A program made the translations under genes and the position numbers. DNA of 64,000 nt from Podarcis liolepis (Eukaryota). The stretch is taken from NCBI GenBank assembly GCA_965112155.1, contig OZ218098.1; one strand, given 5' to 3'. Shown piece after piece: positions 7,898-62,993 of the stretch. The first letter of the stretch is position 1; each line of letters starts with the position of its first letter. Under the pieces are notes generated by a model that was given only the letters and a program-made list of their open reading frames with translations, made no database searches and was not told where the DNA came from.

Positions 7898-7919
7898 TAC
7901 TGATAAAATGTTCAGACTA

Positions 7920-8935
7920 GTGGAATTTTTCAAACAGGACAGGAAAATCGGTTTCCAGGTGGAAAAATCAAAATTAGAAACTGAACTGTTAGAACCCAAC
8001 ACTAAGAATTTATCTAGAATGTATAACTTGTTGCTGAAATGGAATACACAGGATGAAACAGTTAAATCGGCTATGATTAAGTGGGCACAGGATGTTGGAC
8101 ATAACATTATGTCAGCTGACTGGGAATGGTTATGGAACACCGGCATTAAGTTTACGGCATGTAATGCCTTAAAGGAAAACATTATGAAAATGGTTTATAG
8201 GTGGTACATGACCCCAGTCAAGCTGGCAAAAATCTATCATTTGCCCGATAACAAATGTTGGAAGTGTAAAGAGTCTGAAGGTATCTTCTACCACCTTTGG
8301 TGGACATGCCCGAAGATTAAGGCCTTCTGGGAAATGATCTATAATGAAATGAAAAAGGTACTCAAATGTACCTTTTCTAAAAAACCAGAGGCCTTTCTCT
8401 TGGGCATTGTCGGCCAATTGGTGACAAAGAAGGATAGAACTTTTTTCATGTACGCTACAACAGCAGCAAGAATACTCATTGCAAAGTATTGGAAGACACA
8501 AGATTTACCCACTCTGGAAGAATGGCAGATGAAAGTGATGGACTATATGACATTGGCCGAGATGACAGGCAGAATCCGTGACCAACGAAAAGAGACGGTG
8601 GAAGAAGAATGGAGAAAATTTAAAAGTTATCTTAAGGACTACTATAAACTTAATGAATGCTAAAATGTTGTGGTTTTCAGAAACAAAGGGGTACAGGGAT
8701 ATAAGGTTAGAATTTAAAAGAGGACTAAGATGACAGAGATTGGAAAGTAACAATTGGGAGTTGCTAGTTGAATTATGGACATTGGGATGCAGGGAGGGGG
8801 GGTATGGGGAAGTCCAAGAAAAGAGGTTTATGAAAATATGTTTGAAACTATACGTGTATGTTTGTCATTTTTAGTGTTTGTTTTTCTTAAAAATTTTGTA
8901 AAACCAATAAAAATCTTATAAAGAAAAAAAAAAAA
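7920..8935 (+). mobile_element. 5'-truncated L1-clade LINE (ORF2 C-terminus, 3' UTR, polyA)
   Basis: Uninterrupted ORF to 8663 with CCHC knuckle CWKC...HLWWTC; AATAAA and A-tail; perfect 18-bp TSD GATAAAATGTTCAGACTA at 7902-7919 and 8936-8953. Confidence 0.93.
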
Positions 8936-20600: not shown

Positions 20601-21083
20601 AATCTATATACAGTCTTCCTCAGTGGATTCAGCTGTTGCAGGAGCAGCTTCCAGATTTCTCCCCTGGGACAGAGATCCCTTACCAGAGATGCCTCCCACA
20701 CTCCTGAGTGTGAACTGAATTGGAAAAGTAGGCAGCTGGGGTGAATGTGCCTTTGTACACTTGGGCATGTCCCAGTTTGGCCCTAACCCAACTCCTCCCA
20801 GCATTACGGAAAAGACTTGTCCTGTAAGTACTTTGTGCTGCTAGTGGTACTTGTATGTGAAGATTCCCCCACAAGGAACCAGAAGGCCTACCTTATTCTT
20901 GTCCCTGTAGATAGTGACCAACATTCCTATATAATGGGGCTAGCCTGTTTGGGTTTGGATGACACTCTACTTTTCAGTGTCTCATTGGAATTGCCATGTT
21001 CTGCTACACATACAGTTATTTTGCTTTTCTTCCCAGCTGCTCCAAAATCTGCAAAAATTCTCTGCTGCAAGGAAACCAGAGTG

Positions 21084-29930
<8,847 letters not shown>

Positions 29931-31626: not shown

Positions 31627-33571
31627 TCAAATAGGCACGAACCATTCCATAAGTCCACGCGTTTGCTGAGGCCAGTCCCTGCTGGGGCCATTCACATTCC
31701 CTGTCTTGTGCTTACCATTAGCCACTTTCAAAGAGCTGCTACATTCATGAGTCGGAGGGTTGGACAACTGCCCTTGCCCTGCCTCAAGCCACAGTTCCAA
31801 GAAGGTTCGCACAAGCTCCTGCAGCAGAGTGACGTAATGGTTGGAAACCACAGCGTTGCTCTCAAAGAGGTGGTTGCCCAGGGATGAGAACAGACTGGGC
31901 TCCTCACTCACATCTGCCAAGATGGCCAGCTGCCGCGCCAAGAACCCGCGGTGGCTGGAGTCTCCAAGGAACAAGGAAGGCAGGCCAACAACCTGCTTTG
32001 CTCGGCGGATCACCTTTTGTACGGACTCTGCCGGGAGGTACTTTCTTCCCTTGCTCTCCACGCACAGCAGGGCACTGCCCGCAGGCACACCCTTACAAGG
32101 GCACAAGAGGGCAGCGCGGCATTCGGCGCAGGAGAGGAGGGGCAGCAGCTTCCCCAAAACAACCCAGGAAATGCAGGCAATGGCGTCTTCCTCCAACTCG
32201 GCCAGAAAGGCTGGGGCTATGCCCTGTGTCTCTCGTGGAGGCCCAGTGCCCCGAGGCCAGTGCCAGATCTGCCCGCGAGCCAGAGGCCAGGAAGCCTGCA
32301 ACTGGAGGTTAGTTCTTCTGCGTAAGGATATGTCAAGCAGGTTTGGTGGGTCGAGGCCCAGACCAGAAAGAGCTCTGTTCAAGACAAGCCTGTATGCCTG
32401 CTGGAAGGTCCATGCGGGGCCAACACCTTTGTGCCCACGGGCTTGCTGTATGGCTCCCCTGCACCACTCCAGAGGGTCCAGGCTCCACCAACAGGACATC
32501 AAAGAAGTAGTGGGCTCGTCTTCTGCCTGTAGATGGGTCTGCGCCAGCCACTGAAAGCTGCGCAGGTTCACCAGGAAGCCAATGAAGCCCCATCGATGCC
32601 TGCTCAGCCCTACCAGCTCCCCGGTGGCAGTGCGGAGTTTGCGAAGCAGGTTCTCATACTCGTTGCAGAGGTTGTTGAGGGCGCTGGCACTAGCTTGGGA
32701 GAGGGGTGCCTTGAAACCTTTCCCATAGATGCCGCAGCTGCTGCACGCGTCAAAAATGGCACTCAGCAGCCCGATAAAGTGGGCGGTGGCTTCATGACCC
32801 TGAAATTGAGGCAGGCCGAGCCTCGCTGCAAAATGCAAGGCCTGAACCGTGCCCTCGCTGAACAACTGCGTGGCCCCATTTCCCCACACTTGCTGTTTCT
32901 GCGGGCTGATCGCTCCGGCCTGGCATGCCGCCCGGAGCACCACTTCTTCCTGCAGAGCCCCGAGATGCAGGAGGTAATCCCAGCAGACCGCCTTGCCGCT
33001 CACCTGGAGGCTGCCGGCGGCTTGTAGCAAGCGGTGGATCAGCGTCAACAAATGGCTGGGATCGAAGTAGTATGCTATTTCCAGCGTAGGAGTAGCTGGA
33101 TGGAAAAATGTGGACTTGACAAAGAGGCCGTCCACCACCACTCCCAGCCGCCTGGCTGTCTCGATATTGGGAGCTGTGGCATCAGACGTCACAGAGACCA
33201 CCTGCACGCCAATGTCGTACAGTTTGAGGATACAGTGGCATAGGAGCTGGGCTTGTATGTCCCCTCTAAGGGTGGCAAGGAGGAAGTAGCCAACAGGCAC
33301 TATCCACCGGCCTTGGAATCCAACAGCCACAAAGAGGAGGGCTTCTCCGGCTGCCGAAACCTCATCCGCATCATATTTACCAGCACCAAAGTCCATCAAA
33401 CCGTGCAAATGCCCGGTGGAAGGGTCATAGTGGCTTCTCCTTTCCAAAGGGATTGAGCCCATAAGGAGAGAGCACAACTTGAAGGTTTTCTCCCCTGCTT
33501 GAGATCTCTCCGCCAGAGCATTGAAGGCTTGTTGGCTGAATCCCGGTTCGTAATCCAGGTTTGAGAGCCAC
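31627..33571 (-). CDS. THAP9-like exon 6 (transposase core and C-terminus)
   Basis: Acceptor ccctcatag|G TGG; WLSNLDYEPGFSQQAF...CSLL...; 1945 nt open to TGA. Confidence 0.95.
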
Positions 33572-35033
33572 CTATGAGGGAAGAAGCATGGGAAAGAAAG
33601 CTAATCAGCTCCATGTTTGGTTCAAACAAAAATCTTTCTTCTACTGCCAAACTTCAGAGCCTGAGGATAGTATGTTTCTTTGCCCTCATGCTTAAGAAAA
33701 ATCAAAGCATGATGTTACTTTCATAAACTATTTTAGGCCATGCTTGTGCTAGAGGGCCTGAGAATAGTTCCACATGGGAAGGCAGAGCTTGCATCAGTTC
33801 TGCTTATATACTCTAGTTCTCTTTGCAGTATTTGAAATCCAGAAGAAGAAAAAATCTCCCATAAACCATCAGGTGAGCTTGAAAGCCTGTTTTCTTCCCA
33901 ACACACCAAATCATCCATGTGGTTTCCTTTAGGCTAACAGTGCATTTGGCACAGTTTGTGTGGGTCACTCTTAGGTTGCTTCCCAATGGGCTCCTAGTGC
34001 TATCTAATTGTTGCCTTTCTGTGAACTACAAGCAGAGTAACAATTGACTTTCCATAGTACAGGGCACTTTGTGCTTTTCCCACGTGTACATCCCCACCAC
34101 ACTGTGTCCACCACTCTCTACACCACTATTTTATGAGTCCATTTTTAAACACCTATATTTTAATTATCACTGAAAGATGTTTCTGGCTCTTGAAATTAAA
34201 GAGGCACATCATTATAGCACGGTACTTTGATTTTGCCAAGTGCCGGTTGTGTGGTTCTGTGATACACGTGCCTTTGCTATGTCTGCTTTTCTTGATGTTT
34301 CCATAGTCCAAAGTTGTTTTCCCAATATCTGGGCTCTCACAGAATAGCAGAGTACGTTTTCTAGTGACACATCTGATTTTAGTGTTTTAACTGATTTTTA
34401 CCATTTTGCATTGTATCTCTTGTACAGTGGTACCTTGGGTTACAGACGCTTTAGGTTACAGACCCCGCTAACCCAGAAATAGTACCTCAGGTTAAGAACT
34501 TTGCTTCAGGATGAGAACAGAAATCGCACGGCGGCAGCGGGAGGCCCTATTAGCTAAAGTGGTACCTCAGGTTAAGAACAGTTTCAGGTTAAGAACGGAC
34601 CTCCAGAACGAATTAAGTTCTTAACCCGAGGTACCACTGTAAACCACATAGAGACTATTGTAATTAAGTGGCACGTGCGTCTTATGATATTTTTTAGCTT
34701 ATTTCTTTGGTGCCACTGAGTGTTTGGATGGATGGGAGAAGACCAACCAATTCAGACTATCTTTCTTAGGTTGCAATCCTAGATGTATGTATGTGGGACA
34801 GAGAGAGAGAGAGAGAGAGATCATACTTTTTTTGAGAGAGCAAGACATATTTCTGAGAAAACCTTTAGAGGCTTGCAGTGATGCTTATACCTACAAAGTC
34901 TAGTTTTATCAACTAGCACAGCTGTTTCCTTTTCCTTGTGAATTGTCCATTCCTCTGCTTCCTTTTGCTAATAAATCTGATCTTACTTTAACCTCCAGTG
35001 GATGAAAAGCTTAACTTCTCTCTCTCTGTGTGT

Positions 35034-35071
<38 letters not shown>

Positions 35072-38000
35072 GGCACACTACATTCAAGTCTTTTTGTTCA
35101 CCTTGGCTTTCCCCTGAGTTTTGGGCATCATTTACCTCTCTCAAATTGCTTCCATACAACAATGTGATGCCAAGCCAGTGCAGAGGTTGTACTGTCATGC
35201 TGTACTAAACAAGGGACAGCCCGGGTTTAAATTCTGACTCAGTCCTGAAGCTCCCTGGATGACCTAGGGTCAGTCACCATCTCTCAGCTTAACTTGCTTC
35301 ACAGCATTGTTGTGAGGATAAAATGGGGGTCGGACATAGAACCAAGTATGCTACCTTAGGTTCCCTGGAGGAATTTGGGATATAAACAAAGGGCCAAATT
35401 CAACTAACCAGTCTCACTTGTGGAAGCCTGTGCAAGGACTTCCGCTAGTGCAATGAAGGTTTCTCCCTATCCTCCCACTGCATGCCCCCTGCACCTCTGA
35501 TAACAGCTCTGAGGCAGTCAGGAGAACCCCCAGAAGAGCAAGCGTGAGCTGACAGGGTGATCTGTTTAGGGCTACACTGAATTCCTCCCATAATAACCCA
35601 TGTAAAGTGATCAATTAGTTGGCTAGTACATTACTCAAATCTTTCAAGGTTCAATTCCAGTAACCTTGAAAGATTAACCATTTCCCCCCAGCATGCCTTC
35701 AAGGCCAGAGGTTTCTTGACCAACTGCATTTGGTGAAGTAGCAGTGCAATCCTAGCCATGTCTACAGAAGTAAGTCCTATTGAATTCCATGGGGCTTACT
35801 CAGAATAAATGGTGTTGGGCGGCAGCCTAAGCTATTGTTTACAAAAGTCCATGCATCGATAGTCTTCATGGTGCCACAGGCATCCATCTGTCCCTTGCAG
35901 GATGTCAAACTCATTTTTATCTGTCATCCAGCTCAGCCATCCAGCCCTAAATCCTTGGTTACCAACAGTTATATCCTCATGGTTTGACAATTTCCTCCTT
36001 TTGCCCAATATTGCATTTTTAATGAAAGCTTTTCCAGGGGATCTGCAAATATCTCCTCTGAGGAACCTGATTTTCAGATTTGGGCTCTTCTTTTTGGAAC
36101 AAAGGAATTTGCCCTACTTTCCTTGAGGGATTGTTACATTTGCCTGGAATTTGGTTTCCGGCAACCTGAGTGAAGGCATTCTTGATACAGGGCCTCTGAG
36201 GGTGGAACTCCCTTCCCCTCCAGATAACATCTACAGCAGCTCTTAGGAGTTTTCGCAGCTAGTGAAAACTTTTTTTTCATCTGGACATTTGGCTGAATTT
36301 CTCTGTCTCCTCTGCACCTCAAACTTCATATTTGCCCTTGTGGATTGTTTGATGTGGAATTTACTTGTGTAGCATGAGAACAGAGGAAGCTGCCTTATAC
36401 CAAGTCAGACCACTGCTTCATCTAGCTCCACAGTGTCTGCTCTGGCTGGCAGAAACCCTTCAGGATTTGGGGCAGGAGCCTTTTCCCAGCTCAGGGACTG
36501 AACCAGGGACTTTCTGCTTGCAAGTCAGATCCTCTGCAATTGTGGGCCTTCAGAAGATGGCCCAAGAGGTGTCATCCATGTCTGAGCAGTCAGTGGCAAA
36601 TCTTACAAAGAAAGCTTGCAGACAAAGTTCAGGAGTTCCTCTAGGTCTGTATGTGAGGTGTCCCGACATAATGAAGTAGTGTGTTTTCAGGCATTCCCCA
36701 CCCCTCTTTCTTTTCTCCCATCTTAAAAGTGTCACACTGGAAAAAGTAGTTTCTTCAGAAGAAGAAGAAGAAGAGTTTGGATTTGATATCCCGCCTTTCA
36801 CTCCCTTTAAGGAGTCTCAAAGCGGCTAACATTCTCCTTTCCCTTCCTCCCCCACAACAAACACTCTGTGAGGTGAGTGGGGCTGAGAGACTTCAAAGAA
36901 GTGTGACTGGCCCAAGGTCACCCAGCAGCTGCATGTGGAGGAGCGGGGAATCGAACCCGGTTCACCAGATTACGAGACTACCGCTCTTAACCACTACACC
37001 ACACTGGCCCAGCAAGCTAGAATGCATATATAGTGCCTATGTCTGTGCACTGTTGCTTTGCAACGTTTGCCTCTAGTTAACACAAACAAGATACAAATAA
37101 GAAAGACATACGTGCGAAGGGTGGTGACCTCTGGGAGCTGGAATGTCTTCTTCACGAATTCATAGGCCTTGGCTGAGAACAAATGCAGCGAGACGGCAAA
37201 GTTGCGGGTGGCAGCTGGGTAGTTCTCGCACAGGGCTCCCTCACACTGCAAAGTGAGCTGCAGGTCTGCTGAAGTAAAGAGGGTTCCTCAAGCAAGGGAT
37301 GGACAGTGAGGTGAAGCTAATTTGGGGTGATGCTGCAGAGGAAGAGTCTTTAACATTGGCCTCAGCAGTGACTGCTGCATTCAGACTGGAGGCTGGGAGA
37401 AGATTCAACATCCTCTATTTTCATGGGGAAGGAAACCGGGTCCAAAACCCAGGAGGACTGGGTGACCAAGAAAGCAGAGAAGGATGTACTTAAAGTTATT
37501 AAGGGTTTGGGGAAGTGGGGGAGATTTGTAGCAATTGCATACTGAGCACAACTGGCCAGTCGGAAATGCTGAGGAGGTAATCAAGTGAGGTAGGGGGGCT
37601 GAAACAATGCCAATATATTCCACATCTGGCAACCAATGTGCTCCTTTGGTTTCAGAAAGTACATGGGTAGATGACTCTAAAAAGCCCAGGACACAATTTT
37701 TTCACGGCCTTCTAGCAGCTACGGTGGTTCATTTACCAGAAGTAATGTATTTAGTGTTAACTCTGGGAGCGTATACTTGATTCTGACCAAACTAAGCCTC
37801 CTACAGCAAAATATACATAAGGAGGCATAGTATGGTTAGAATCAAGTATACACTTCCAAAGTTAACACTAAATACATTACTTCTGGTGCGTGAGCCGCTA
37901 GAGGGCTGTGAAAACTACCCCACGCATCTTAACCAAGCCTTGAAGCTGGTTTGTATCACGGCTCCCTCCGTGGAACCTTGAATGATTCTGAAACTGCACT

Positions 38001-40867
38001 GGTCTTATTGCAAAGGCCTCTGGCATGAAGAAGAGCCCCTTTGGCAAAGCTTACGGTGCTTACCGCTGAACTGGGAGCGCAGCGTGTGTTCCATGTCCTT
38101 CTGGAGGAGATGCTGCTCCCGCAGGCTCTCCAGCACACTCCACAGCTCCTGCTGATAATAGGAGAGGCGGCGCTGGGCTGCGTCCTGCTCCCGTTCAGTC
38201 CCCTGCACTGGGCCAGTGGGGATCAGAGACTTGGTTCTGCTGCCCATAGCTTCACTCAGACTATACTGATGCTCCGCTTGGATGAGCTCCACCTACAGGA
38301 AGACAAAGAAGACCCGTTGCTCCATCTCTTTAATTCTCTCACCATAACTTCCATGTTCTCCCAGCACCCAATGTTTGTCCATGCGGATTTTCCACAAAGG
38401 GCTGGATTTGCTTATTCCTGAAAACTAAACTGACTTCACCTTTCTCCTTTGCCTTGATTTTCCTTTTAGCCTCTCACCACAGCCAGAGTAAACCGTTCCC
38501 AGACTCCCTTCTCCCATCAGATTCACAATAGTTAGTGGATGTGGCCACTCTCCTTCTTTAAAGCTAACTTAGGATACTGTGATGGAAGTCAGGTTCTGCA
38601 GTTTGCTCCAGGAGCAAAGAATGTTCTACCTTTGTACAGTAGGCTGGTTCTACTCACACTTACACACACCCTCCATCCAGGCCCACAAGAAGCATTATTT
38701 GAGGTCAAGGACACATTCCAGCCAGGCACAAACACTCAAGGAGGATGCAATCTAAGAACAATTAGGGATGTGGCCTTGGAAGAGTGGGTGTGGCCTGGGG
38801 AGTGTCCAGAGGGCCAGAGAGGGACCTGGAGGGCCACATTTCACCCATGGGCCTGAGGTTCCCCATCTCCGCTATAGGCTTTGTCCAAGTCCCAATGGTA
38901 ATATAAGCTACATGCTAGAGCATTTAGTGACACACAGTTTTGTAATTTTAGATTCTGACTTAACGGTCTCCTGGTGGGGAGGAGGGGCTCTTCATATGGT
39001 AAGGTCCATTACTTTTTTCAGAATTTGGAGCCAGCTCTGCTGTGTTTAGCGTTCTCCTGCTCATTCTTCTGTGTGGGGCCCTTGACCTCTGCCCCAAAGT
39101 CCTTCCCAACAGCTGCATTGCTGACACTGGAGAAGGCACCAGCTACCCTCGCTGGTATACGTACTGCTTTGGCTTGTGCAGGAGATGAGTCAGCTGCTGG
39201 AGTAGCTTCGCTGATACTAGCCACTGGCCAACTGATGCCCATGGTTTTGACAGACTTTGATGGATGTTTCCCTTTTGTTGGTTCCTGTATTGAGAAAGAG
39301 TTCAAATGAATTAGACATAGCAATTCGACCAAAAAAAGAAAAAGGCCTAGTTGAAACAGACTGGATAAGCTAATGCTGTAGTAGAAGGCAAAAGTGACCA
39401 AAAAATAATCCCCAACAACATTGCCATGGTATTACTGGAACTAATTAAGCATACTTCAAACTTTAGAGGCTGGATCCAGGTTATGCCTTAGTCCCACACA
39501 ATGAATGAGGCAACTTACTCATGACTATCTTAAATTTCATCAATTTAACTGGGTGGAAAGTTAACCGCTCGGCTGCAATCTAGATACACTTATCTCAAAG
39601 TCCCACTGAAGTCACTGGGATTTACTTATGTGTAGACATGTGTTGATTGTGGCATTATGTTTGATCCAACCTACTCTCTATGTTATTTACTCATTGTCAG
39701 GCAAACCCAGATTTATTTCAAATGAAGAAAAAAGGCATTTCTGAGACCAGAATACAGATGAGGGCTTATGTATTGGAATAGCCATCCACTACAAAACTAA
39801 TTCACTGCACAATAAAGGTAACATTGTCAGAGACAGTTGTTCTCTTAGCCTCCTTCATGGTGTGCTGGTTTTCCAGTGTCTGACTTCAAACACAGAATTC
39901 CTTGCCTGTGCTCTGAAATAGTATAGTCTGAAGGTTAAGACACATCCCTTTTCCTCAACACCAGCTGTCAGGCATGGGAAGGGAATGAATTCTGGACTCT
40001 CGGAACAGAGACACGCAATGCCTACACTGATTTGACAGCAACTCTCCATGGCTCTAGGCAGGAGTCTTTAGCCAGCACTACCTCGAGATGCCAGACATTG
40101 CACCTGGGCCCTTCTACATGCAATGCAAATATTCTGCCTCTGCATCACCTTGCCTCCCCATTATTATCAGTGGGATATGGAAGGAAAACTGGCTTTGGAA
40201 GTAAAGCTTCGTAGCCTTTTCAGACAGAGGCCTAATCTCAAGCATGCCAGCTCTTCAGGTGCAGATTATTATATCAAACTTCCTAAAACATTTCCGATGC
40301 TGCTGGGCTACAAGGTACACACCAAAAACGACTATAAAAATCTATGCCCAATGACCACTACAGAAAATACACCAAAGACAAAAGAAAAGGAAGAAAATTG
40401 CACAGATGAATATGGTTCCTAAGGCATTTTGAGAACCAAAGGGGGGGAATGCTTCTTAATAAAAACTGCTTGGAACATTCCCCCACCCCACTGCAGCACA
40501 CCTAAGCATATTCCCCCCGCCCCCACTTTGACGTAGTGGGAACCATATCCATCTCTGCAGCTGTCCCTTTTTTTGTTTTAGGACTATGGAAATCCTCTGC
40601 TGAGCCCACAAGCCGGTGGCAGAACAGGAAAAGTGCTGGGAGACCTTGACCTTCATCAAAAGCTGCAATGTTAAATGCACTTACACAAAGAGGGGTACAA
40701 CCAATAGGATACAATGACACTTAACCTCTGACTAAATATGGATAGGACTGTTGGAAATGTTTGATAACAAAGTGTATAAGAAAGAAGGGAAACTCTGCAA
40801 TGTGTCTTCCTCTGGGAGAGTTATCAGCTGAAGTGTGGGATACAAATTTTCAAAATAAGGTAAATCC

Positions 40868-40905
<38 letters not shown>

Positions 40906-43900
40906 CTGCTACTTAAAGTGTCCCTGAATTTGGTGCATTTGCCTGACCACCTTATTCCTGCTGTTCCCTGATCCTTCTGTGTCTTGTCCCTCTGTTGAAG
41001 TGTGAGCTAATTTTGGCAGGGTGCCAATATATTGACTACTGTACAACACTTAACATACATTTAAGCACTTTAATAAATAGATTTACCCACTGAATATTGC
41101 TCCCAGTACAGCAATCCCTTCCTTGTTCCTGTCTTCCATTTCTACATATAGTACTATATTTCATGTCAGGCTATCATCTGGACACCCCTTCTATTGCCAA
41201 CAAATGGTCTGTCCTAGCAGGTATCTGGATAAAGAAGTTCTTTTGTGGCTCCTTCTTCACTGTATGACCCTTTGTCCGAGCAGCTGAATCAGAGACTCAT
41301 AAAATGTGTTGGCACTTCTTCAGCTTTCCAGTTCCTGCTATTACGGAGCAAAAAGCTGATGAACCACAGTTCTTCTCTTCCATTCCCTTTACATATACAC
41401 CCCCAAGGCCCACTACCAATTCCCAAACTCTCATCCTCCCTTACTGCATTTTCCTTCCTTCAACCCAAGTTTGCAAGTTTAAGTAAATCCTCTCCCTATT
41501 CTGAATCCCACTGCTTTTGGCAATGTGTCTTTTTCCTTCACATATTCCCACTTTCAATTCATTCTCTTGCACCTGTGTTCAGTGGATTACATACTAGGAA
41601 ATGTGTCTATCTACTCAACTGTCTTCAAAAATAAACACAATCACCTACAGCTTATTTTTCTTCATTTAACGGATGGTCTTAGAAGCCATTGCTTCCTGAG
41701 CAGCAGGGGTGAGGAAACTTTTTGGGCCCAAGAGCTGCACTGCCCCATGGAGAACCTTACAAGGGCCACATGCAAGTCATGGAGGAGGCCAGAGGCAAAA
41801 TTGGGCGGGGCACCAGATGGGACTCTTATCTACATAGGCTACATCCTAGTCATGCAAAAGTCATAACAATCTGTACTCCCTGACCCCCACATACACACAC
41901 CTTTCCATTCACACAAGCAAAAGGCATCATCACAGACATCTTCCAGCCAGGCAACAGTTCACAAGAAGGGCACAGAACAGGGACACTGAAGGGTGTGGCC
42001 TAGTGAGAGTCATGAGGGCCTGAAAGAAAGGCCTAGAGAGCCACATTCACCCTCAAACCTGAGGTTTCCTAACACCGCTGAATGAGAAGGGAAAAGTACC
42101 ATGGAAAAGTGAGGTTGTATCAAATCTTATTCATATGCAGAGAAGACCCACTGAAACTAACAGACATGACTAACTTGGGTTCATTAATTTTAATGGGCCT
42201 ACACCAAGCAGAAATTAGTTGTAGTCAACCCTTAGAGGTTTCGGGTTTTAGACTGGACCAGAACCTGAGGTAGCACATATTTTAGGGACAAAGGAGATCT
42301 AGGAGGAGGGCCCTTGAGGTTAGTAAATGAGAATCAAGCTGCAGCTCAGAAATCCCTCAGTGTGGCCCAAATTGCTGAGCAGGGCAGACAATTAAAAAGT
42401 CCAGCTAAGCTGCCAAGGTGAGCTGCACTACAGCTTTCCTGACCAGGGAAGAGTCACTAGCAGGAAGCCTTTCCTGTCCTGTACAAGGAAGACAAACATC
42501 CCTAATGCCAGCAATTCTTACATTTCTGCTGCCTTCACAGAAAACCAGGGGATGGGATCGGAAGCATCCACCTCTGCAGCTCTGTATTGTCAGAGACTAG
42601 GAATGCTGTCAGAAATTATGAGGCATTTGAGGGGCCTGGGTAAGATTTAGGGACGAGAACCAGCCTTCTTGTTCCTGTACCACAACTCTTTCCCCTCTAG
42701 GACAGCATGACTCACACCAAGGAGGACAAGAGACAAGCCCCTGGTTGTGCAATGTCATTTCCCCACCCCTTTGGCTATAAAAAATTCAAATGACTTTCCA
42801 TTCAAATGAATTTATTTCAACTTTTGGAAAGAGGCAAGGAGGGTGCACTCTCCCCAGGCGCTCATTTTTTGGACTGAGGTAGCAAATCCAGTTATTACAC
42901 CAGGGCCTACTCACAGGATGTTGCGGTTACCTCACTAATCCAAACCAGATGTTGAGGATCCCAGAGACCATTGCTTTCTTCATGCAGTAACCCAGGCCTC
43001 TCCCAGATGTGAGCAAGATATCAAGGCTGAGAGAAACCCCCTCAGAAAGTCCAAACAGTACCAAATAAGACTACTCCATTTAGAATGCATTTTGCATCTG
43101 CCTAGTTCTTTAAGAGGCCTGATTGTTCTACAAAGGCACCAAACTAAACTCAGTTCTCCTTCTGTGAGAAGGATTACAAAACAGGCCACAGGTAGGCTGC
43201 ATATGGATAAAATCACTTCTTTTGGGATGGTTCCAACCCCCACCCCCGGCCATCTTCTGTGTTTGTCATTTCCTTCTACCTTCTATGACCCCAGATGAAA
43301 GCTTTCAATTGCCATAGGTAGCGCAAGATCTTCTGCCTCAATCCACAAAGGAGATCTACCTAGCTCAGCATCTTGCTTCAAAGAGTAACAAGCCACATGC
43401 TGCTAGGGACTTGCTTCAAATCTTAATGTAACCCAGGATACCCTGCCCTCTTGGACATTTTGTTCCTGCCATAGCATGACATTTAACAACAGCTGTACAT
43501 ACTGAAACTTTTCGTGGACAGTGCTTGCATTATTCAGGGACTGAAGACAAGGAGGCAGGGCACTCTCCTGAAACAAACACTTGGCAGTTAAGAGCAGTGT
43601 GCCTATGTTGCAGCTTCAGAGGCATACAGATCACCCATTCTGAAAGAAAACAACAAGAAACACAGGACAGAAAGCCCCAGGGAGCTACGTTTTGGGCAGC
43701 CTATGCACTGATGAATACAACCAGCAATAAAGGGGGAGAGTGGGGGAAAGGTCCCACATTGCAGCCAAATCTGATGTTCCCTCTTGTGGCAAAACCAAAA
43801 CGTTATTCTGTGCAGAGATTCTTTTAGATTGGATCAGCAATACTTCCAGAAAAACAACCACCACCTCCTTATACCATGGAGGCGTGGAAAAAAGATTAGA

Positions 43901-46362
43901 TATGAGGCAAACACAACGAATTATGAAGTGGATATAAAGAGTGAGGGGCACACAGTCTCCCCCCCCCCTTTTTAAACGTCATAGCAAGGACAGAAAACAT
44001 GATCTTCCGATGTTGTTGTGAATCCAACAGAGATGATGGGAATTGTATCTAACAACATCCCTACCTCTGACTTACAAGCTACAGACAAATCAAGACCTTT
44101 CTGCTCTAAATAAGTGAGAGACAGGAACAAAACCTTAGTTCAACTCTCTTCCATCTTTATTCATTGAGCTATACCAATCCCAGATCCTACAAAGATGTGC
44201 ATCCAGGATAGACTTATCTGTAAGGTGAGAGTCTAGATGCTAACTTGTGTCAACATGCAGTCACATGGACACATCCCAGCTAACAACTAAACATTTAAGT
44301 TGACTAAGCTTTACTCAGAGTACACCCACTGAAATGAATAAACATGACTAAGTTAGGGCCATTAAGTTCAATGGGTCTACTCTGAGTAAAACTTAGTTGA
44401 ATGCTACCCTTGAACGAAGTAGCAATCTTATACTGTAAATACTGTAGGAAGAAGAGGGGAGATATCTGGCTATTGTACCAGGAGACCAGCCATTATATCT
44501 GAGGAAAACACACAACTCAGAAAGCATTGAAATGGTGTAAAAACAGCAGACCGCCCTCCCCCACACTTCCTACTACAGTACTAAGAAACTCTACCAAAGC
44601 CCACCAATCAGGGACTATAGGTGATGGTGCCCACAAATGGAGGGAGCCAGCGAACTCTTAATGACTCAAACACACACACACAAAGAGCAGGTGTCCCTTC
44701 ATCACAACATGAGAAACCAGCAGTAACTCTGCTGCTTGAAGCCCCAAAACATCCCAATAAGCAGGGGTTCAAGACTCCTTTTGCTGCTCTCAAACACAAT
44801 TTTGTAGCCAAAACACGCAAGGGAAAGGAAGAAGATCCCACCCAACACAGCACTCATGTTGTTCCCATAGCACATATAGAGCCGATCCCAAGCAGTGCCG
44901 GAAAGAGGCAAGTTGAGGGGCAGTTCAAGGTCCAGGCAACGAGTGTTCCAGCCTGGTACTGAGGTCTTTGAGCTGGAGCTACCGGAACCACACCCAGGGG
45001 TCCAGCTGAGTTTCATGAGCTGTTGTCAAAGAAAGACTCCCAAGTCTGGTACTTCCCTTTATGGACAGGTTTCCATTTGCTGTTTAAAACATTGTTGCTC
45101 CTACAAGCTCAGGGTCCATCCAGCCTTAGCTTCTGAGGCCAAACTCTCCCACTGTGCCAACAGCCCCATAGCGGCCTTGTCCAAGAGTCCCAACTTACTC
45201 ATCTCCCCAGATCTAGTCAGGTCTGGGGCTTTGCTAAGTACTGGGGGCTCCAGGTCATCCTCCAATGAGGAATTCTCCAGCTAATACATAGTACAGGGGT
45301 AGGCAACCTAAGGCCCGTGGGCCAGATGTGGCCCAATGCCTTCTCAATCCGGCCCGCGGATAGTCCAGGAATCAGCGTGTTTTTACATGAGTAGAATGTG
45401 TCCTTTTATTTAAAATGCATCTCTGGGTTATTTGTGGGGCACAGAAATTTGTTCATTCCCCTCCCCCAAAAAATATAGTCAAGCCCCCCACATGGTCTGA
45501 GGGACAGTGGACCGGCCCATGGCTGAAAAAGGTTGCTGACCCCTGATATAGCAGCAGCAGTAGTGGGGGCTCTCCAGCCTGCAAGATTACAGTGGTGCCC
45601 CGCAAGACGAATGCCTCGCAAGATGGAAAACTCGCTAGACGAAAGGGTTTTCCGTTTTGGAGGTGCTTCACAAAACGAATCTCCTATGGGCTTGCTTCAC
45701 AAGACAAAAATGTCTTGCGAGTTCCTGCGGGTTTTTCCCCCCTCCCCCCCTTTTTCTAAGCCGCTAAGCCGCTTATCAGCTGATCCGATAAGCCGATAAG
45801 CCGCTAAAAGCCGGTAATAGCGCTAATCCGTCAATGGGCTTGCTTCGCAAGACGAAAAAACCGCTAGACGAAGAGAATCACAGAACGGATTCTTTTCGTC
45901 TTGCGAGGCACCACTGTATTTAGGCCCACCAGGCTGCCCCATTTGGTCTGTGAAGGCGTTTTGGTCAATCCAAGCCCATCTGTCCTACACCGGATGTCAT
46001 ATATGTCATCAGGTGTCAGGCAAGCAAAGACAAAGCTCAGCCAAAAACGGTCTGGCTTGCAAAGCAGCTGATTGCAGGCACCTACAAAGTACTGTGCCCT
46101 TGGTTTGATTTCAAGCTGTGCAGGTCAAAGGAAGATGAGTCACCTGACATTACAGTGATGTTGGCTGGCTGACAGGTGGGCAACCCCATCCACTCATTAA
46201 AGTTGGCCCCTGGGTGGTGGGGAACATAAGGACCCTCAAGTCTTCTGACCAGCCAATTCCCCACTCCAGAATAGGGCATGGAGCTGAGAAGCAACCCATG
46301 CCCACTCAGCTAGTGTAACTGTAGTATCGAATTACAATGAAATTCTCTCCCACTGAATAATA

Positions 46363-46411
<49 letters not shown>

Positions 46412-49400
46412 ACCGCAGACATCCAACTGGCTTGCCCCAGACACTCTGGGCATCTTTCAACATAATATAAAAACATAGTGAGACATCAAACATTAAAAAC
46501 TTCCCGATACAGGGCTGTATTTGGAAAGTTGTGTAATTGTTCATTCTTTGACATCTGATGTGGGGGCATTCAACAGGGCGAGTGCCACTACTGAGAAGGC
46601 CCTCTGCCTGGTTCCGTGTAACTTCACTTCTCACAATGAAGGAACCACCAGAACGCACTCAGAACTGGACCTCAGAGCTGAATGATGGGGGCGAAGCTGC
46701 TCTTTTAGGTATACAGAGCCGAGGCCATGAAATCAGTGAGACCTGAAATTTCTTAAACTTGAATAGATTCTGCCTGAACTTGCAAGCAGAAATGGAAACA
46801 CTGCAACCAGGGTGTGGCGCAAACTCAGTGAAACGTTACACAAAGTGGCCATTGTCTGCCGAGCAATCATGTGTGGGTTTGCATATTGCAGGGCTCCCCA
46901 CAAAGCACTCCAGTGTTAAAAAAAACAAAACCCCAACCTTCTAGATGTCCGTCCCCCCTGTTATGTAAACCTAATAAGCAACCTGGAGGAAACTAAAATC
47001 TGGATCAAGTAGAGGAACTCTAAAAAAGAAATAGAAACATAAAGATACCCTGAAACACACATAAATTGGTCAGTCAACACGTTTTGAATTAATGCTCAAG
47101 GTGGTATAGAAAAGTTGAATACAATGGAAATAAGAGCTAAATATAACCTCCATTCTTCCTGTGTGCTAATATAATGTTACTGTTAAAACCTTCCTACCCT
47201 ACAGCAATGAAATATGGAGTGACACTGTGACATAAAGAGGAAATTGGGGGGGGAGGAACGATGACATTTTATTACAGTGGTACCTTGGGTTACATACGCT
47301 TCAGGTTACACACACTTCAGGTTACACACTCCGCTAACCCAGAAATAGTGCTTCAGGTTAAGAACTTTGCTTCAGGGTAAGAACAGAAATCGGGCTCTGG
47401 TGGCGCAGCAGCAGCAGGAGGCCCCATTAGCTAAAGTGGTGCTTCAGGTTAAGAACAGTTTCAGGTTAAGAACGGACCTCCAGAACGAATTAAGTACTTA
47501 ACCTGAGGTACCACTGTACAAGCAAATCTTCCAGAAGCATAGAAATGAACAGCGCAACTAGATAATGTGCAGGGGTGTGGGAAGTGTATTTACAGAACAA
47601 TCCTATTCTCGTGCTATGACAAAGAGGCAGTAGATAAGTCACCACTTTGTTGGCTGAATAGCTGCCACACCCAATGCAAGCTCAACCTGAAACAGTGTGG
47701 TGTGGAACACACAGCACAGAAATGCCAAAAGCAGTATAAACACAACAGACACAAACTCACTGCCCCTAGAAACATCCTAAAGCCTACAAGTTAAGGACCA
47801 TGCCTGGAATGAGAGCCAGTGTAGCGTAGTAGGGAGAGTATTGGACTAGGACCTGGAAGAACGGAGTTCAAATCCCCTCTCAGATATGAAGTGCACTGGG
47901 TGACTTTGCGCTAGTCACAATCTCTCAGCCTAACCTACTGTACAAGGGTGTTGCAATAGTGAAATGGGGATGGGGACAACTGTGTATACCACCTTGAACT
48001 CCTGGAGGAAAGGCAGGATATAAATGTAATAGTGAAGGATGCCCACCAATGGGGCATTTGGCCTCCCACTCCCACCTCCAAGCCCCAGCATCCAATTAGA
48101 GGTGCTAGGAGCACAAGGGTTGCAGGAGAAGCCCTGGTTTGTTAGAAAAGTGCAGCAGGGCTTCTGCTAAACCCTGCAGCCCCTCAACCAGCAGAGAGCG
48201 GGCCTTTTCTGTGGTGGCTCCTCATCTGTGCAATGCTCTCCGCAGAGAGGCTCACCTGCCACTATCATTACATGTCTTTAGGCGCCAAGCAAAAACATTC
48301 CTCTTTACCCGGGCCTCCAGCCATTAAATAATCTATGGCTTGTTAAATGTGTTTGTGGCAGGGACTGTTATGGTGAATATTTTATTAGCATGCATCTATA
48401 ATTATGCTCTGCATTATGTTTTTGATTATTATGCTCCGTGAAATATGTTCTTGATGTTGTACACCACTCTGGGATCTTTGGATAAAGGGTGGTATATAAA
48501 CTGAAATCATCATCATCATCATCTTCACTGTATGATTGTGCCCTTAAGTTTCTGGTATCTTCTTACTCCAAGCCCCTCACATGTCCTCCACCACACAGCA
48601 TATATTGTATAATAATATTATGGCTCCCCCCAGTGGTTCATGCTGTTGATGCACTACAGTGCTGGGAGAGGGAATCAAACACTTCTCCAAACTTTGAGGC
48701 TACTTGTTGCTGGGAACAGAGCAAGGGCAACAACATGAATTGGTGTGAGATAATCTTCAGGTGTACTAACATAGTGTCAGCAGCACTGTTTTATTATGAC
48801 TGCTTGCAGTCTTGTCTACCTTGGTAAAGGAAATCTTTATTACCCCATGAAATAAGGCAGCATGGCTTGGATCATGAGCAAGAACATCAAGACACACGGA
48901 AAGAAGAGTAGCAGTTAGCGACAAGAACACATGACCAGCATGTCAAAGTTTAAAGCCCTGCTGGATCACATCAAGGGCTGTTTAGACCAGTAGTGGCACA
49001 CCTTTTTTCAGACCAGGCTCCCTATTTCCTTCTGAGCGCCAGATTCCAGTGGTGGGTGGGGCAGTACCAAAAGTAGGCAGAGCAATAAATGCAAATTTAC
49101 CTTTCTATACACACTTACACATCATACACCCCTCTTTATCTTCCATCCAGACAAGCAAGACACATCATTAGAGCTCCAACTAGGAAACAATATTCAGGGT
49201 GTGAAGGGTATCAGCCTGGGAAGAGTTCCAAGTGCCGGAAGAAGAAGAAGAATTTGGATTTGATATCCCGCTTTATCACTACCCAAAGGAATCTCAAAGC
49301 AGCTAACATTCTCCTTTCCCTTCCTCCCCCACAACAAACACTCTGTGAGGTGAGTGAGGCTGAGAGATTTCAGAGAAGTGTGACTAGCCCAAGGTCACCC

Positions 49401-50820
49401 AGCAGCTGCATGTGGAGGAGCGGAGACGCGAACCCGGTTCACCAGATTACAAGTCTACCACTCTTAACCACTACACCACACTGGCTCTGCCAGAGAGGGA
49501 GGCCTGGAGGACTGTGTTTGGTCCCCAGGCCTGAGGTTCTCCATCCCTGATTGAGACCAACATCTTGGTTCCCAGTTACCAACCAGATGCCTCTGGGAAG
49601 CCCAACGTGAGGGTAAAAACCATCCCGTCCCCCCAGTAAATGGCAATTCAGAGACAGTTGGAGCTGGCCTATGACCATCATGATTAGTTACAACTGATAC
49701 TTTTAAAAGCAAAGTGGGAAATAAGATTATCTAAATCCTCGTGTTAAAACTCGACTGTTAGCTGACTGTGCCTCTTCAGACTGTGGGTGGGTGATCAAAT
49801 GGAGAAATGCTTTCTGATATTTTAGGTATACACTTGTCTGTGCAGAAAAATTATCAGTGGGAGGGAATGTGGACACTCATCCCTCACTTGTAGTCTTTAA
49901 GAATTTGGGGGAGCATATGGCTTCTATACAACTGGGCATCACAGGAGCCAACTCCTAGGGGCTGTGGGGGCTTTGGCCCCTACAATAAAATATTTAAGGG
50001 GGCCAGGCCCCCATAAAGTTGATGGGCATTTCCATTCAAATGGTGTGTGTGCACTATATCATGTGATCGATTATGCGGAGCAGGGTTTACCTGGGCCCCC
50101 ACAATATTTTATTTAAATTGGCACCCCTGCTGGGCATTCAGAAGCATCACTGCCTCTTGACAGCAGCGCAGCCCCATGAATCCTCTTTTATAGGCACCTA
50201 AGCTGGTGGCCACCACTGGGGGAGCAGTCACGGAGGCTAATACTCTGCTTTAAACCATGGTAGAGCATTGGCTACTTGGTGATACTGCCTGGCAGCACTC
50301 TCCTCCCTTCTCTGGCACTGCGATACCTTGAAGGAGAACACGGAGGGGATCACGCCTGCCTTCAGCCTCTTCTGTCCTCCATACACCTCGAATTCATCCT
50401 GGAAGAAATGATCTGAGCAGATGCAGGCGCCGGAGCCTGGGATCCACAGCTTCCTGGAGCCGGGCTCGATGCGATTCACAGCCAGCATCCACTTCTTCCT
50501 CAGTTCGTGGGCTTTGGGGAAGCTGCAGGAGGAAGAAGAGATGGGAAACTATAAATCCCACTGACTTTCCCCACATGGGCTGATGGTGCAGGTGACGACA
50601 CCGACTGACACAAAGCCCCGCCCACAACCTCACACCGGGCCCCGCCCCCTGGTAGCCAAAGCCCCGCCCCTGCCGCTAATAGGCTTAGAACCACCCACAC
50701 TCTCCATGAGGAGGCCCTATTACGGTATTCAGATGCAGACCTGTGGAATGAGAGGCCCTTGGCCCGGTTCTCCCGCGTGTCCCGGTTGGGGCAGTTAACG
50801 GCCGAGCAAGCTTTAGGCAT
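31627..50820 (-). CDS. THAP9-like P-element transposase-derived protein, spliced CDS of about 907 aa
   Basis: Join (minus) 50820-50741,50522-50327,39284-39165,38292-38064,37265-37112,33571-31627 = 2724 nt, open, all introns GT-AG. Contains a THAP C2CH finger, EHQY, a coiled coil, and VTSDATA / YYFDPSHLL / ATQLFSE / SLDPLE / CAEC motifs collinear with human THAP9 as I recall it. Orthology to THAP9 is unresolved, so no symbol is given. Confidence 0.92.
34425..34639. mobile_element. Tc1/mariner-type MITE, family copy 2
   Basis: TA-flanked CAGTGGTACC...GGTACCACTG. Confidence 0.88.
35036..35069 (+). repeat. (AC)17 microsatellite
   Basis: Read directly. Confidence 0.95.
36757..37008 (-). mobile_element. 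tRNA-derived SINE with (CTT)n tail (Squam3-like)
   Basis: Minus strand has A box TGGTGTAGTGG, B box GGTTCGATTCC and a (CTT)n tail; nearly identical to 49238-49488. Family name from recall. Confidence 0.85.
37112..37265 (-). CDS. THAP9-like exon 5 (helix-turn-helix region)
   Basis: DLQLT...YPAATRNFAVSLHLFSAKAYEFVKKTFQLPEVTTLRT; cagcag acceptor, gtatgt donor; phase 1/2. Confidence 0.92.
37697..37914. repeat. Long imperfect inverted repeat (foldback/MITE-like)
   Basis: Arms of about 95 bp, e.g. ACCAGAAGTAATGTATTTAGTGTTAACT / AGTTAACACTAAATACATTACTTCTGGT, with a loop of about 17 nt. Confidence 0.85.
38064..38292 (-). CDS. THAP9-like exon 4 (EHQY motif + coiled coil)
   Basis: VELIQAEHQYS...LESLREQHLLQKDMEHTLRSQFS; ctgtag acceptor, gtaagc donor. 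Confidence 0.9.
39165..39284 (-). CDS. THAP9-like exon 3 (low-complexity linker)
   Basis: ctttctcaatacag|EPTKGKHPSK...AQAKA|gtacgt, phase 0/0. Based on splice signals only, no homology support. Confidence 0.65.
40868..40903 (+). repeat. (GATA)9 microsatellite
   Basis: Read directly. Confidence 0.95.
41704..42078. mobile_element. Old hAT-like non-autonomous element
   Basis: CAGGGGTGAGGAAAC...CCTGAGGTTTCCTAACACC; related pieces near 38660-38870 and 48988-49549. Confidence 0.55.
44300..44410. repeat. Short palindromic MITE-like element
   Basis: ACTAAGCTTTACTCAGAGTACACCCACTGAA / TTCAATGGGTCTACTCTGAGTAAAACTTAGT inverted arms; diverged relatives near 2500 and 42130-42230. Confidence 0.6.
45294..45545. 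mobile_element. hAT-type MITE (same family as 9653, opposite orientation)
   Basis: CAGGGGTAGGCAA...TTGCTGACCCCTG; degenerate 8-bp TSD ACATAGTA/ATATAGCA. Confidence 0.82.
45590..45916. mobile_element. Tc1/mariner-type MITE (distinct family)
   Basis: TA-flanked TIRs CAGTGGTGCCCCGCAAGACGAA / TTCGTCTTGCGAGGCACCACTG; internal TAAGCCG tandem units. Confidence 0.85.
46362..46730 (-). mobile_element. L2-type LINE 3' end with (TAAA)n/(TAA)n tail
   Basis: Simple-repeat tail; the minus strand reads RQRAFSVVALALLNA, resembling the L2 ORF2 C-terminal RAFSVxAPxLWNxLP motif. Confidence 0.7.
47275..47516. mobile_element. Tc1/mariner-type MITE, family copy 3
   Basis: TA-flanked CAGTGGTACC...GGTACCACTG. Confidence 0.88.
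47811..48031 (+). mobile_element. Older tRNA/CORE-type SINE
   Basis: A-box-like and B-box-like (GAGTTCAAATCC) head and a CORE-like TCTCTCAGCCTAACCTAC; relatives near 35210-35385 and 63150-63350. Confidence 0.65.
48190..48500 (+). mobile_element. L2-type LINE 3' remnant
   Basis: RERAFSVVAPHLCNAL...FRRQAKTFLF peptide. Confidence 0.65.
49238..49488 (-). mobile_element. tRNA-derived SINE with (CTT)n tail (Squam3-like), copy 2
   Basis: Near-identical to 36757-37008; nested in an older hAT-like element. Confidence 0.85.
50327..50522 (-). CDS. THAP9-like exon 2 (THAP domain, C-terminal part)
   Basis: FPKAHELRKKWMLAVNRIEPGSRKLWIPGSGACICSDHF...LKAGVIPSVF; 196 nt. Confidence 0.95.
50741..50820 (-). 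CDS. THAP9-like exon 1 (THAP domain, N-terminal part)
   Basis: MPKACSAVNCPNRDTRENRAKGLSFH; 80 nt; donor AG|gtctgc. Confidence 0.93.
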
Positions 50821-51022
50821 CGTCTCCCACTCCGCGGCGAAAAGCCCCAATCCCGGCTCCCGCCAAGCGCGGTTACTTTGCCTCGAGCGTCATGGCGGCA
50901 ACGTCCGCGGCGCACTCTGGACTGACCCCGTTGGCGACCCGTCGGAGGGAAACACCCCGCGCGCGGATTGGTCCCCGCGGCGACCTGTTGCCGGCCGCGG
51001 TGGGTGCTGGGAAAAAGAAAAC
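50821..51022. promoter_or_regulatory. Bidirectional CpG-island promoter region (THAP9-like / ARFGAP2)
   Basis: 202 bp between divergent ATGs; CpG-rich; ATTGG (CCAAT box) at 50967-50971; YY1-like CATGGCGGC at 50891 and 51022; GC boxes at 50610-50670. Confidence 0.85.

Positions 51023-62993
<11,971 letters not shown>

Follow-up and report, generated by a model that had tools for sequence, protein, structure and literature searches.

To our knowledge, the literature treats THAP9 as the sole domesticated P-element transposase of vertebrates, and its canonical position is beside SEC31A/LIN54. In the human genome, the head-to-head partner of THAP9 is THAP9-AS1/SEC31A (PMC9326536). The other closest described systems are the P-element transposase of Drosophila (DmTNP), the zebrafish Pdre2 / THAP9 transposon, and the HCF-1-binding THAP regulators, including THAP1 and THAP11/Ronin. 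Here, we describe a P-element-transposase-derived gene in a 64,000-nucleotide stretch of contig OZ218098.1 (assembly GCA_965112155.1) of the lizard Podarcis liolepis, which is called the window below. The gene is located on the minus strand, its ATG begins at position 50820, and the last base of its TGA stop codon is at position 31627. It is probably a single-copy host gene and an ancient paralogue of THAP9 that originated before the split of mammals and sauropsids and was lost in mammals and birds, and a role as a regulator is proposed for its product. The paralogue and its orthologues are referred to as clade A, and the true THAP9 proteins as clade B.

The gene is already present in the annotation, either named THAP9 or listed as an uncharacterised LOC. 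Judged from sequence comparison, it is a second gene that was domesticated from a P-element transposase; it is strongly conserved, has an age of more than 300 million years, and shares the database name of the first. No paper recognising two THAP9-type genes in reptiles was found in the literature searched.

Structure and integrity of the gene

The 908-aa "DNA transposase THAP9 isoform X1" of Podarcis raffonei (P0001), which is about 96% identical to the window protein, was used as its full-length proxy. With P0001 as the tblastn query, six collinear coding blocks were identified on the minus strand, whereas the window exons were searched singly, without a joined protein. The exon boundaries were determined from splice sites read in the sequence and from spliced RNA contigs. 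The coding exons are:

50741-50820, minus strand: coding exon 1; ATG at 50820-50818; THAP zinc finger, N-terminal half (MPKACSAVNCPNRDTRENRAKGLSFH, followed by 2 nt of the next codon)
50327-50522, minus strand: coding exon 2; remaining half of the THAP finger with C-x2-H and the GVIPSVF motif; Pfam PF05485, E 2e-5
39165-39284, minus strand: coding exon 3; linker of 40 codons
38064-38292, minus strand: coding exon 4; EHQY motif of the HCF-1-binding type and a leucine-heptad, coiled-coil-like stretch; both ends set by spliced contigs
37110-37265, minus strand: coding exon 5; P-element-type helix-turn-helix; Pfam PF12017, E 3e-14; ends read from record 9 of X17 and record 2 of X11 (spliced contigs)
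31627-33569, minus strand: coding exon 6 and stop, 646 codons; split RNase H-like core, GTP-binding-type insertion domain and THAP9 C-terminal domain

The exons add up to 2721 nt, or 907 codons, with no internal stops or frameshifts. The junctions checked are of the GT..AG type, with the donor GT of exon 1 at 50740-50739, and the window contains no N. The coding part of exon 6 spans 33569-31630 and is followed by the stop codon at 31629-31627. The product of exon 2 is 100% identical to residues 27-92 of P0001, and about 15 residues of exon 3 form an insert that has no counterpart in true THAP9. Pfam domains recognised in exon 6 are PF21787 (TNP-like RNaseH_N, E 9e-32), PF21788 (GTP-binding insertion, 3e-27), and PF22824 (THAP9_C, 8e-11), and the C-terminal domain contains a conserved CxxC motif. 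The intact six-exon reading frame of about 907 aa, as well as the succession of THAP finger, EHQY, coiled coil, helix-turn-helix, RNase H-like core, and CxxC put forward in the original prediction, are thus recovered in full. The window protein shares 97.7% identity with that of P. muralis, 96% with those of P. raffonei and P. lilfordi, and 94% with that of Zootoca.

The AlphaFold2 model of the exon 6 product has a mean predicted local distance difference test score of 75.6. In a Foldseek search, its best match in the PDB is 6p5a_A, the strand-transfer complex of the Drosophila P-element transposase (E 6e-17, template modelling score 0.66, 428 aligned columns), and a search of the ESM Atlas returned only generic arthropod P-transposase clusters.

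Isoforms that differ by one Ala at the junction of exons 4 and 5 are annotated in Podarcis (908/907 aa, P0001/P0343) and in Chelonia (910/909 aa, P0312/P0307). The occurrence of such pairs in both genera suggests that an alternative acceptor of the NAGNAG type at 37265-37268 (exon 5) has been retained since lizards and turtles separated. In the RNA contigs analysed here, the acceptor at 37265 is used. The isoforms of clade B proteins differ only in internal-Met starts and carry no exon-junction information.

Two THAP9-type clades and the age of their split

An exhaustive HMMER search, which covered 1.84 billion representatives, revealed a gap in sequence identity. Two clusters, one of them from Alligator, are 61-69% identical to the query, followed by "THAP9" of the leopard gecko at 34% and "THAP9" of a tinamou at 32%; the matches below THAP9 are transposon-type open reading frames with identities of 31% or less. 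Searches seeded with this gene and with a profile built from 13 clade A proteins yielded the same 19 proteins. Clade A has members in lacertids, the amphisbaenian Rhineura, Varanus, Elgaria, Anolis, Phrynocephalus, boid and pythonid snakes, turtles, and crocodilians, in addition to a broken cobra model, and there is one gene per annotated lacertid species (90% cluster). With gecko THAP9 as the query, clade B was found in mammals, birds, turtles, crocodilians, a gecko, and a cordylid, and no true THAP9 was found among the predicted proteins of lacertids, iguanians, anguimorphs, and snakes. It appears from these searches that lacertids keep only the clade A paralogue as a THAP9-type gene, which may be why it bears the THAP9 name in their annotation, and an intact true THAP9 is probably not to be expected as a second locus in this genome.

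Both clades occur together, with one protein each, in Chelonia mydas, Chelydra serpentina, Crocodylus porosus, Lepidochelys, and Eretmochelys. In Chelonia mydas, the two genes lie on separate contigs of chromosome scale, the clade A gene (annotated as "uncharacterized protein LOC102930032") on one of 134.4 Mb and the clade B gene ("DNA transposase THAP9") on one of 142.3 Mb. Within one species (green turtle, snapping turtle, or saltwater crocodile), the clade A and clade B proteins are collinear and 34-36% identical.

Among predicted proteins, squamates appear to be sorted reciprocally: only Eublepharis and Hemicordylus have true THAP9, and only Lacertoidea, Anguimorpha, Iguania, and Serpentes have the paralogue. 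The "THAP domain-containing protein 9, partial" of the king cobra Ophiophagus hannah (P0019, 36% identity) was considered as a second paralogue and rejected, because its alignment identifies it as the same clade A gene. P0019 aligns to clade A in broken blocks only, and represents either a badly modelled gene or one in decay. No colubroid snakes besides it were among the clade A matches.

Two phylogenetic trees were calculated, the first from 62 rows with the LG+C20 model and posterior mean site frequencies, and the second from 35 rows and 575 columns with LG+F+G4 and ultrafast bootstraps (UFBoot) in iqtree2. Clade A, clade B, and the two clades combined each received a support of 100 in the Shimodaira-Hasegawa-like approximate likelihood ratio test (SH-aLRT) in the first tree, and of 100/100 (SH-aLRT/UFBoot) in the second. 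Clade A is the sister group of all true THAP9 proteins, including the mammalian ones, and both clades mirror the species tree. The gene from the window lies outside the clade of mammalian and avian THAP9.

These relationships bear on a rival explanation of the locus, according to which the gene is a plain orthologue of THAP9 that moved to a new chromosomal site in reptiles and evolves fast. In favour of this explanation are the name "DNA transposase THAP9" that NCBI gives to the gene of lacertids, Varanus, Anolis, snakes, and Alligator, and a published analysis in which the lizard, turtle, and alligator NCBI "orthologs" were accepted (PMC10824691). We regard it as very improbable, since turtles and crocodiles hold both genes in one genome, clades A and B are reciprocally monophyletic with full support, and the true THAP9 proteins of the gecko and the cordylid are just 33-34% identical to this protein. 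Furthermore, clade A evolves more slowly than clade B among sauropsids, and full-length identities among lizard, turtle, and crocodile proteins are 62-74% in clade A, with 55-67% as the equivalent for true THAP9. Of the two possibilities raised in the original prediction, a second THAP9 paralogue or a relocated THAP9, the first is borne out by the separate and fully supported clade, resolved in the phylogeny with THAP9 and transposon-type outgroups, and by its co-existence with true THAP9 in turtles and a crocodile; relocation is not.

Forcing clade A to group with the sauropsid members of clade B costs 34 log-likelihood units and is rejected by the approximately unbiased (AU) test (p-AU 0.0008; iqtree2, LG+F+G4, 35 rows). 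The second catalytic Asp agrees with this result. In all clade B proteins sampled from sauropsids (15 species), it has been lost, with Ala in its place in reptiles and Gly in birds, and it is retained in clade A, mammalian THAP9, and transposon outgroups. Together, the test and the residue indicate that the split of A and B predates the mammal-sauropsid divergence. Because the split would then be older than the amniote ancestor, clade A must have been lost in mammals and birds. Loss in mammals, one of two histories proposed earlier, is therefore favoured and extends to birds, whereas the other, a gain in reptiles, is contradicted by the AU test.

The stem of clade A is very long, about 0.9 substitutions per site, and its internal branches are short. 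The length of the stem would fit an independent domestication, in which an early amniote or tetrapod acquired a separate insertion of a related P-type transposon between PACSIN3 and ARFGAP2, so that the gene would not be a duplicate of a THAP9 gene domesticated before. The locus, which is unlike the presumed position of THAP9, points in the same direction, as does the site of the first catalytic Asp, which is Gly in clade A and still Asp in several clade B reptiles; since these retain the Asp, its loss is not a shared derived state. However, clades A and B are monophyletic against the 28 closest transposon-type representatives (SH-aLRT 100), albeit with poor sampling of vertebrate transposons. 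They have in common the derived motifs SVTSDATA (TxDG in the outgroups) and YFFD.xH, which the outgroups lack, and they are alike in length, collinear architecture, the position of [DE]HxY, and the QF(S/T)-DLQ junction region. An independent domestication is therefore quite improbable, and duplication of an ancestral THAP9-type gene remains our preferred explanation.

Constraint, catalytic residues, and proposed role

The RNA data analysed come from three small runs of three studies, from a sister species about 1% diverged from the window. Spliced contigs (for example X17 record 9 of 1433 nt, X11 record 2, and X19 record 21) join 33569|37110-37265|38064-38292, so that exons 6, 5, and 4 are spliced exactly and the introns are removed. 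The depth of unique intron bins is zero in the runs with spliced contigs, which shows that they represent RNA. In a raw-read RNA-seq run, only sparse reads of exon 6 are present, indicating low expression in that sample.

In the first 867 nt of exon 6, 14 of the 20 differences listed are synonymous and 6 are non-synonymous. The resulting ratio of non-synonymous to synonymous differences per site (pN/pS) of 0.135 is well under 1 (binomial p 1.7e-5 against neutrality), as an estimate that rests on the differences listed, of which there are at least 20. Together with the conservation of clade A, the ratio indicates that purifying selection has maintained the gene in crocodilians, turtles, and most squamates.

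The intact transposase-type frame, with the second Asp and the catalytic Glu present, would also be expected of an active or recently active copy of a P-type transposon. The probability of this is practically negligible, because the gene has six exons over 19 kb with repeat-filled introns and no pair of terminal inverted repeats bracketing it, there is one gene per annotated lacertid genome, and the orthologues track the species tree over about 280 million years. The pN/pS of 0.13, the shared CpG-island promoter, and the Gly that replaces the first Asp in all members argue in the same way. The earlier view that the locus is a host gene and not a mobile element is upheld by the exon structure, the lack of bracketing repeats, the pN/pS value, and the species-tree-like orthologues.

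Motif columns were compared in 15 clade A sequences for the site equivalent to DmTNP D230 and in 13 clade A proteins for the N-terminal module, with residue roles taken from published work (PMC8230255, PMC7776569, bioRxiv 10.64898/2026.09.03.748810). The C2CH zinc ligands C5, C10, C62, and H65 and the signature residues P29, W38, and P86 are invariant in the 13 proteins. Equally invariant are E139, H140, and Y142 of the EHQY motif (residues 139-142) and the heptad leucines. EHQY matches the HCF-1-binding consensus common to most THAP proteins (PMC13631171). The key codons of exon 6, located by motif alignment, are:

33459-33457, minus strand: Gly at the site of the first catalytic Asp
33393-33391, minus strand: Asp of MDFG
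33183-33181, minus strand: second catalytic Asp
32469-32467, minus strand: catalytic Glu

The catalytic core is a mosaic of retained and replaced residues. The first catalytic Asp (DmTNP D230), which is located in beta-1 and is part of a "DEM" motif in transposon outgroups, is Gly in 15 out of 15 clade A sequences. All members of clade A have the second Asp (DmTNP D303, hTHAP9 D374), all except two species have the Asp that corresponds to hTHAP9 D304, and all except crocodilians, in which it is Gln, have the catalytic Glu (E531/E613). The complete Asp-Asp-Glu (DDE) triad of D230, D303, and E531 is thus absent from clade A. In DmTNP, GTP is contacted by K385, K400, V401, S409, F443, D444, N447, and D528 (PMC7776569). 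Five of these eight residues are present in the lizard protein, and K385, K400, and N447 are replaced by Ala, Gln, and Ser, respectively. The YKEFR-type motif around the catalytic Glu, reported in a 2026 preprint to be important for integration by hTHAP9 (bioRxiv 10.64898/2026.09.03.748810), is rewritten as WW..LDPLEWC in clade A. Because the first Asp is Gly in all members, two lysines of the GTP pocket are gone, and the YKEFR-type motif is rewritten, GTP-dependent cut-and-paste activity has probably been lost.

In true THAP9, the motif of the second Asp reads VTSAATA in the gecko, the cordylid, turtles, and crocodilians, VTSGA in birds, and VTSDATA in mammals (P0020, P0186, P0187, P0334, P0198, and others). 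By the human criterion, the true THAP9 proteins of birds and reptiles should be catalytically dead.

The preserved and altered parts of the protein point to a regulator that binds DNA and recruits HCF-1, a reading favoured because the N-terminal module is invariant while the catalytic core is mosaic. It is reasonably probable that the protein is a sequence-specific chromatin or DNA-binding factor. The gene is probably transcribed from the CpG-island promoter that it has in common with ARFGAP2, with splicing of its six coding exons. The invariant C2CH THAP finger would bind DNA, and the invariant EHQY may recruit HCF-1 by analogy with other THAP proteins. Oligomerisation and additional DNA contacts could come from the heptad region and from the conserved core derived from the transposase, with the core as a scaffold. 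The residue pattern fits the DNA-binding regulator suggested in the original prediction, a role that we infer from it.

Several points weigh against the interpretation of the gene as an ancient regulatory paralogue. The long stem of clade A could be subject to long-branch attraction to the outgroup, which would inflate the age of the split. The outgroups are mostly unnamed transposon-like open reading frames and a spider element, and the tree is without named THAP9 proteins from amphibians, fish, and lampreys. That the gene is absent from birds, mammals, amphibians, geckos, and skinks was judged from databases of predicted proteins, searched through a word filter. The expression evidence is of low depth and from the sister species. 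Finally, human THAP9 was reported to be active despite lacking the canonical first Asp (PMC8230255), and the loss of this residue in clade A is therefore not proof of lost catalysis.

It is possible, but rather unlikely, that the second Asp and the Glu support a residual metal-dependent nuclease activity. A further reading is that two ancient domesticated genes split the ancestral properties between them, and that in non-avian reptiles the clade A protein is the THAP9-type nuclease or recombinase with catalytic competence. It draws on the loss of the second Asp from sauropsid true THAP9 and on the strong constraint under which clade A keeps Asp and Glu, with Gln for Glu in crocodilians. If this were the case, the apparent reciprocal retention in squamates, with B only in the gecko and the cordylid and A only in other lizards and snakes, would reflect partial functional redundancy. 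We consider such a division of labour improbable, and a DNA-binding regulator is the role that we favour.

Genomic surroundings and comparison with known systems

The gene is flanked by PACSIN3-like and ARFGAP2-like genes, and not by the SEC31A/LIN54 neighbourhood of THAP9. The flanking features are:

50600-51400, no strand: CpG island, shared bidirectional promoter; GC 0.647, CpG observed/expected 0.87
51023-51611, plus strand: first two coding exons of the ARFGAP2-like gene, head-to-head with the THAP9-type gene; exon 1 at 51023-51094, ArfGap exon within 51492-51611 (Pfam 6e-20)
21080-29930, plus strand: coding exons of the PACSIN3-like gene, tail-to-tail with the THAP9-type gene; last (SH3) exon ending at about 29927, other exons at 21.0-27.4 kb, weak FCH match

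The ATG of the THAP9-type gene, on the minus strand at 50820, is separated by 202 bp from that of the ARFGAP2-like gene, on the plus strand at 51023, and the end of the PACSIN SH3 exon lies 1.7 kb beyond the stop codon of the THAP9-type gene. The PACSIN exons and the ArfGap exon place the gene where the original prediction had put it, between PACSIN3 and ARFGAP2. The choice of these two names over PACSIN2 and ARFGAP3 is an assumption based on human sequences. The predicted CpG-island promoter is present, and the reported lack of visible terminal inverted repeats or a target-site duplication is in line with our search of 31.6-50.9 kb, in which no inverted-repeat pair bracketing the gene was found, only small intronic pairs resembling miniature inverted-repeat transposable elements (MITEs). 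No Rfam matches were found in 29.5-53 kb.

The MITE-like elements in the introns are positioned at 34414-34650, 47272-47522, and 45588-45918, and have the terminal inverted repeats TACAGTGGTACCTYGGGTTA, with a related type TACAGTGGTGCCCCGCAAGACGAA. The copy at 34.4-34.8 kb has a word depth of at least 1e5 in the RNA runs, indicating that the family is very abundant and transcribed. Two copies of a repeat resembling short interspersed elements are located in opposite introns, at 36711-37092 and about 49200-49550. They have the pseudo-open reading frame …NLKAANILLSLPPPQQTLCEVS… in common and reach very high depths in the RNA runs. An open frame of 251 aa at 7908-8663 on the plus strand, upstream of the PACSIN coding exons (21.0-29.9 kb), contains a CWxC…H…W.CP pattern that recalls the C-termini of ORF2 proteins of long interspersed elements; it has no Pfam matches. 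A second CpG-rich block at positions 1-2000 of the window (GC 0.62, CpG observed/expected 0.74) may serve as a promoter for the PACSIN3-like gene or for the neighbour upstream of it.

The two clades call for a correction of orthology, as the entries named "THAP9" in lacertids, Anolis, Varanus, snakes, and Alligator mississippiensis belong to the paralogue. Studies that pooled NCBI "orthologs" (PMC10824691) may therefore mix two genes. Clades A and B lost different catalytic residues, and provide a natural comparison of which transposase features selection keeps after domestication. The loss in mammals and birds and the apparent reciprocal retention in squamates can be used to probe redundancy. 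The advance is incremental, and the gene is not a new kind of system.

The closest relative of the gene in the trees is THAP9 of mammals and birds. The THAP finger, [DE]HxY, heptad, P-type helix-turn-helix, split RNase H with insertion, and THAP9_C follow in the same order in both proteins, which are similar in length (903 aa in human, 907 aa here) and have a large last exon. The canonical first Asp is missing from both, with Lys in mammals and Gly here (bioRxiv 10.64898/2026.09.03.748810). In contrast to THAP9, the gene belongs to a separate clade with identities of 32-36% even within one genome, its head-to-head partner is ARFGAP2 instead of the THAP9-AS1/SEC31A of human (PMC9326536), WW..LDPLEWC replaces YKEFR, the GTP-pocket lysines are gone, and exon 3 carries the 15-residue insert. 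The second catalytic Asp, lost in sauropsid THAP9, is present here.

DmTNP (PDB 6P5A/6PE2) is the best structural match of the protein, and the two can be aligned directly in sequence over the RNase H and GTP-binding domains. Equivalents of D303, D339/H342, D528, E531, V401, S409, F443, and D444 are present. However, the identity is about 20%, the sites of D230, K385, and K400 carry Gly, Ala, and Gln or Arg, respectively, and that of N447 carries Ser in the lizard. Furthermore, the gene is an intron-bearing, fixed host gene without terminal inverted repeats or a target-site duplication. The zebrafish Pdre2 / THAP9 transposon, which belongs to the vertebrate P superfamily, has the same domain set (PMC10983969, PMC7776569), but it is mobile, and has terminal inverted repeats of 13 bp, 8-bp target duplications, and deleted copies (PMC7776569), whereas no inverted pair brackets the gene in the window. 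The HCF-1-binding regulators THAP1, THAP11/Ronin, and others resemble the protein in the C2CH finger followed by [DE]HxY and a coiled-coil-like stretch, a module that is invariant in clade A (PMC13631171). Regulators of the THAP1 and THAP11/Ronin type lack a transposase core, whereas in the lizard protein the module is followed by about 650 conserved transposase-derived residues.

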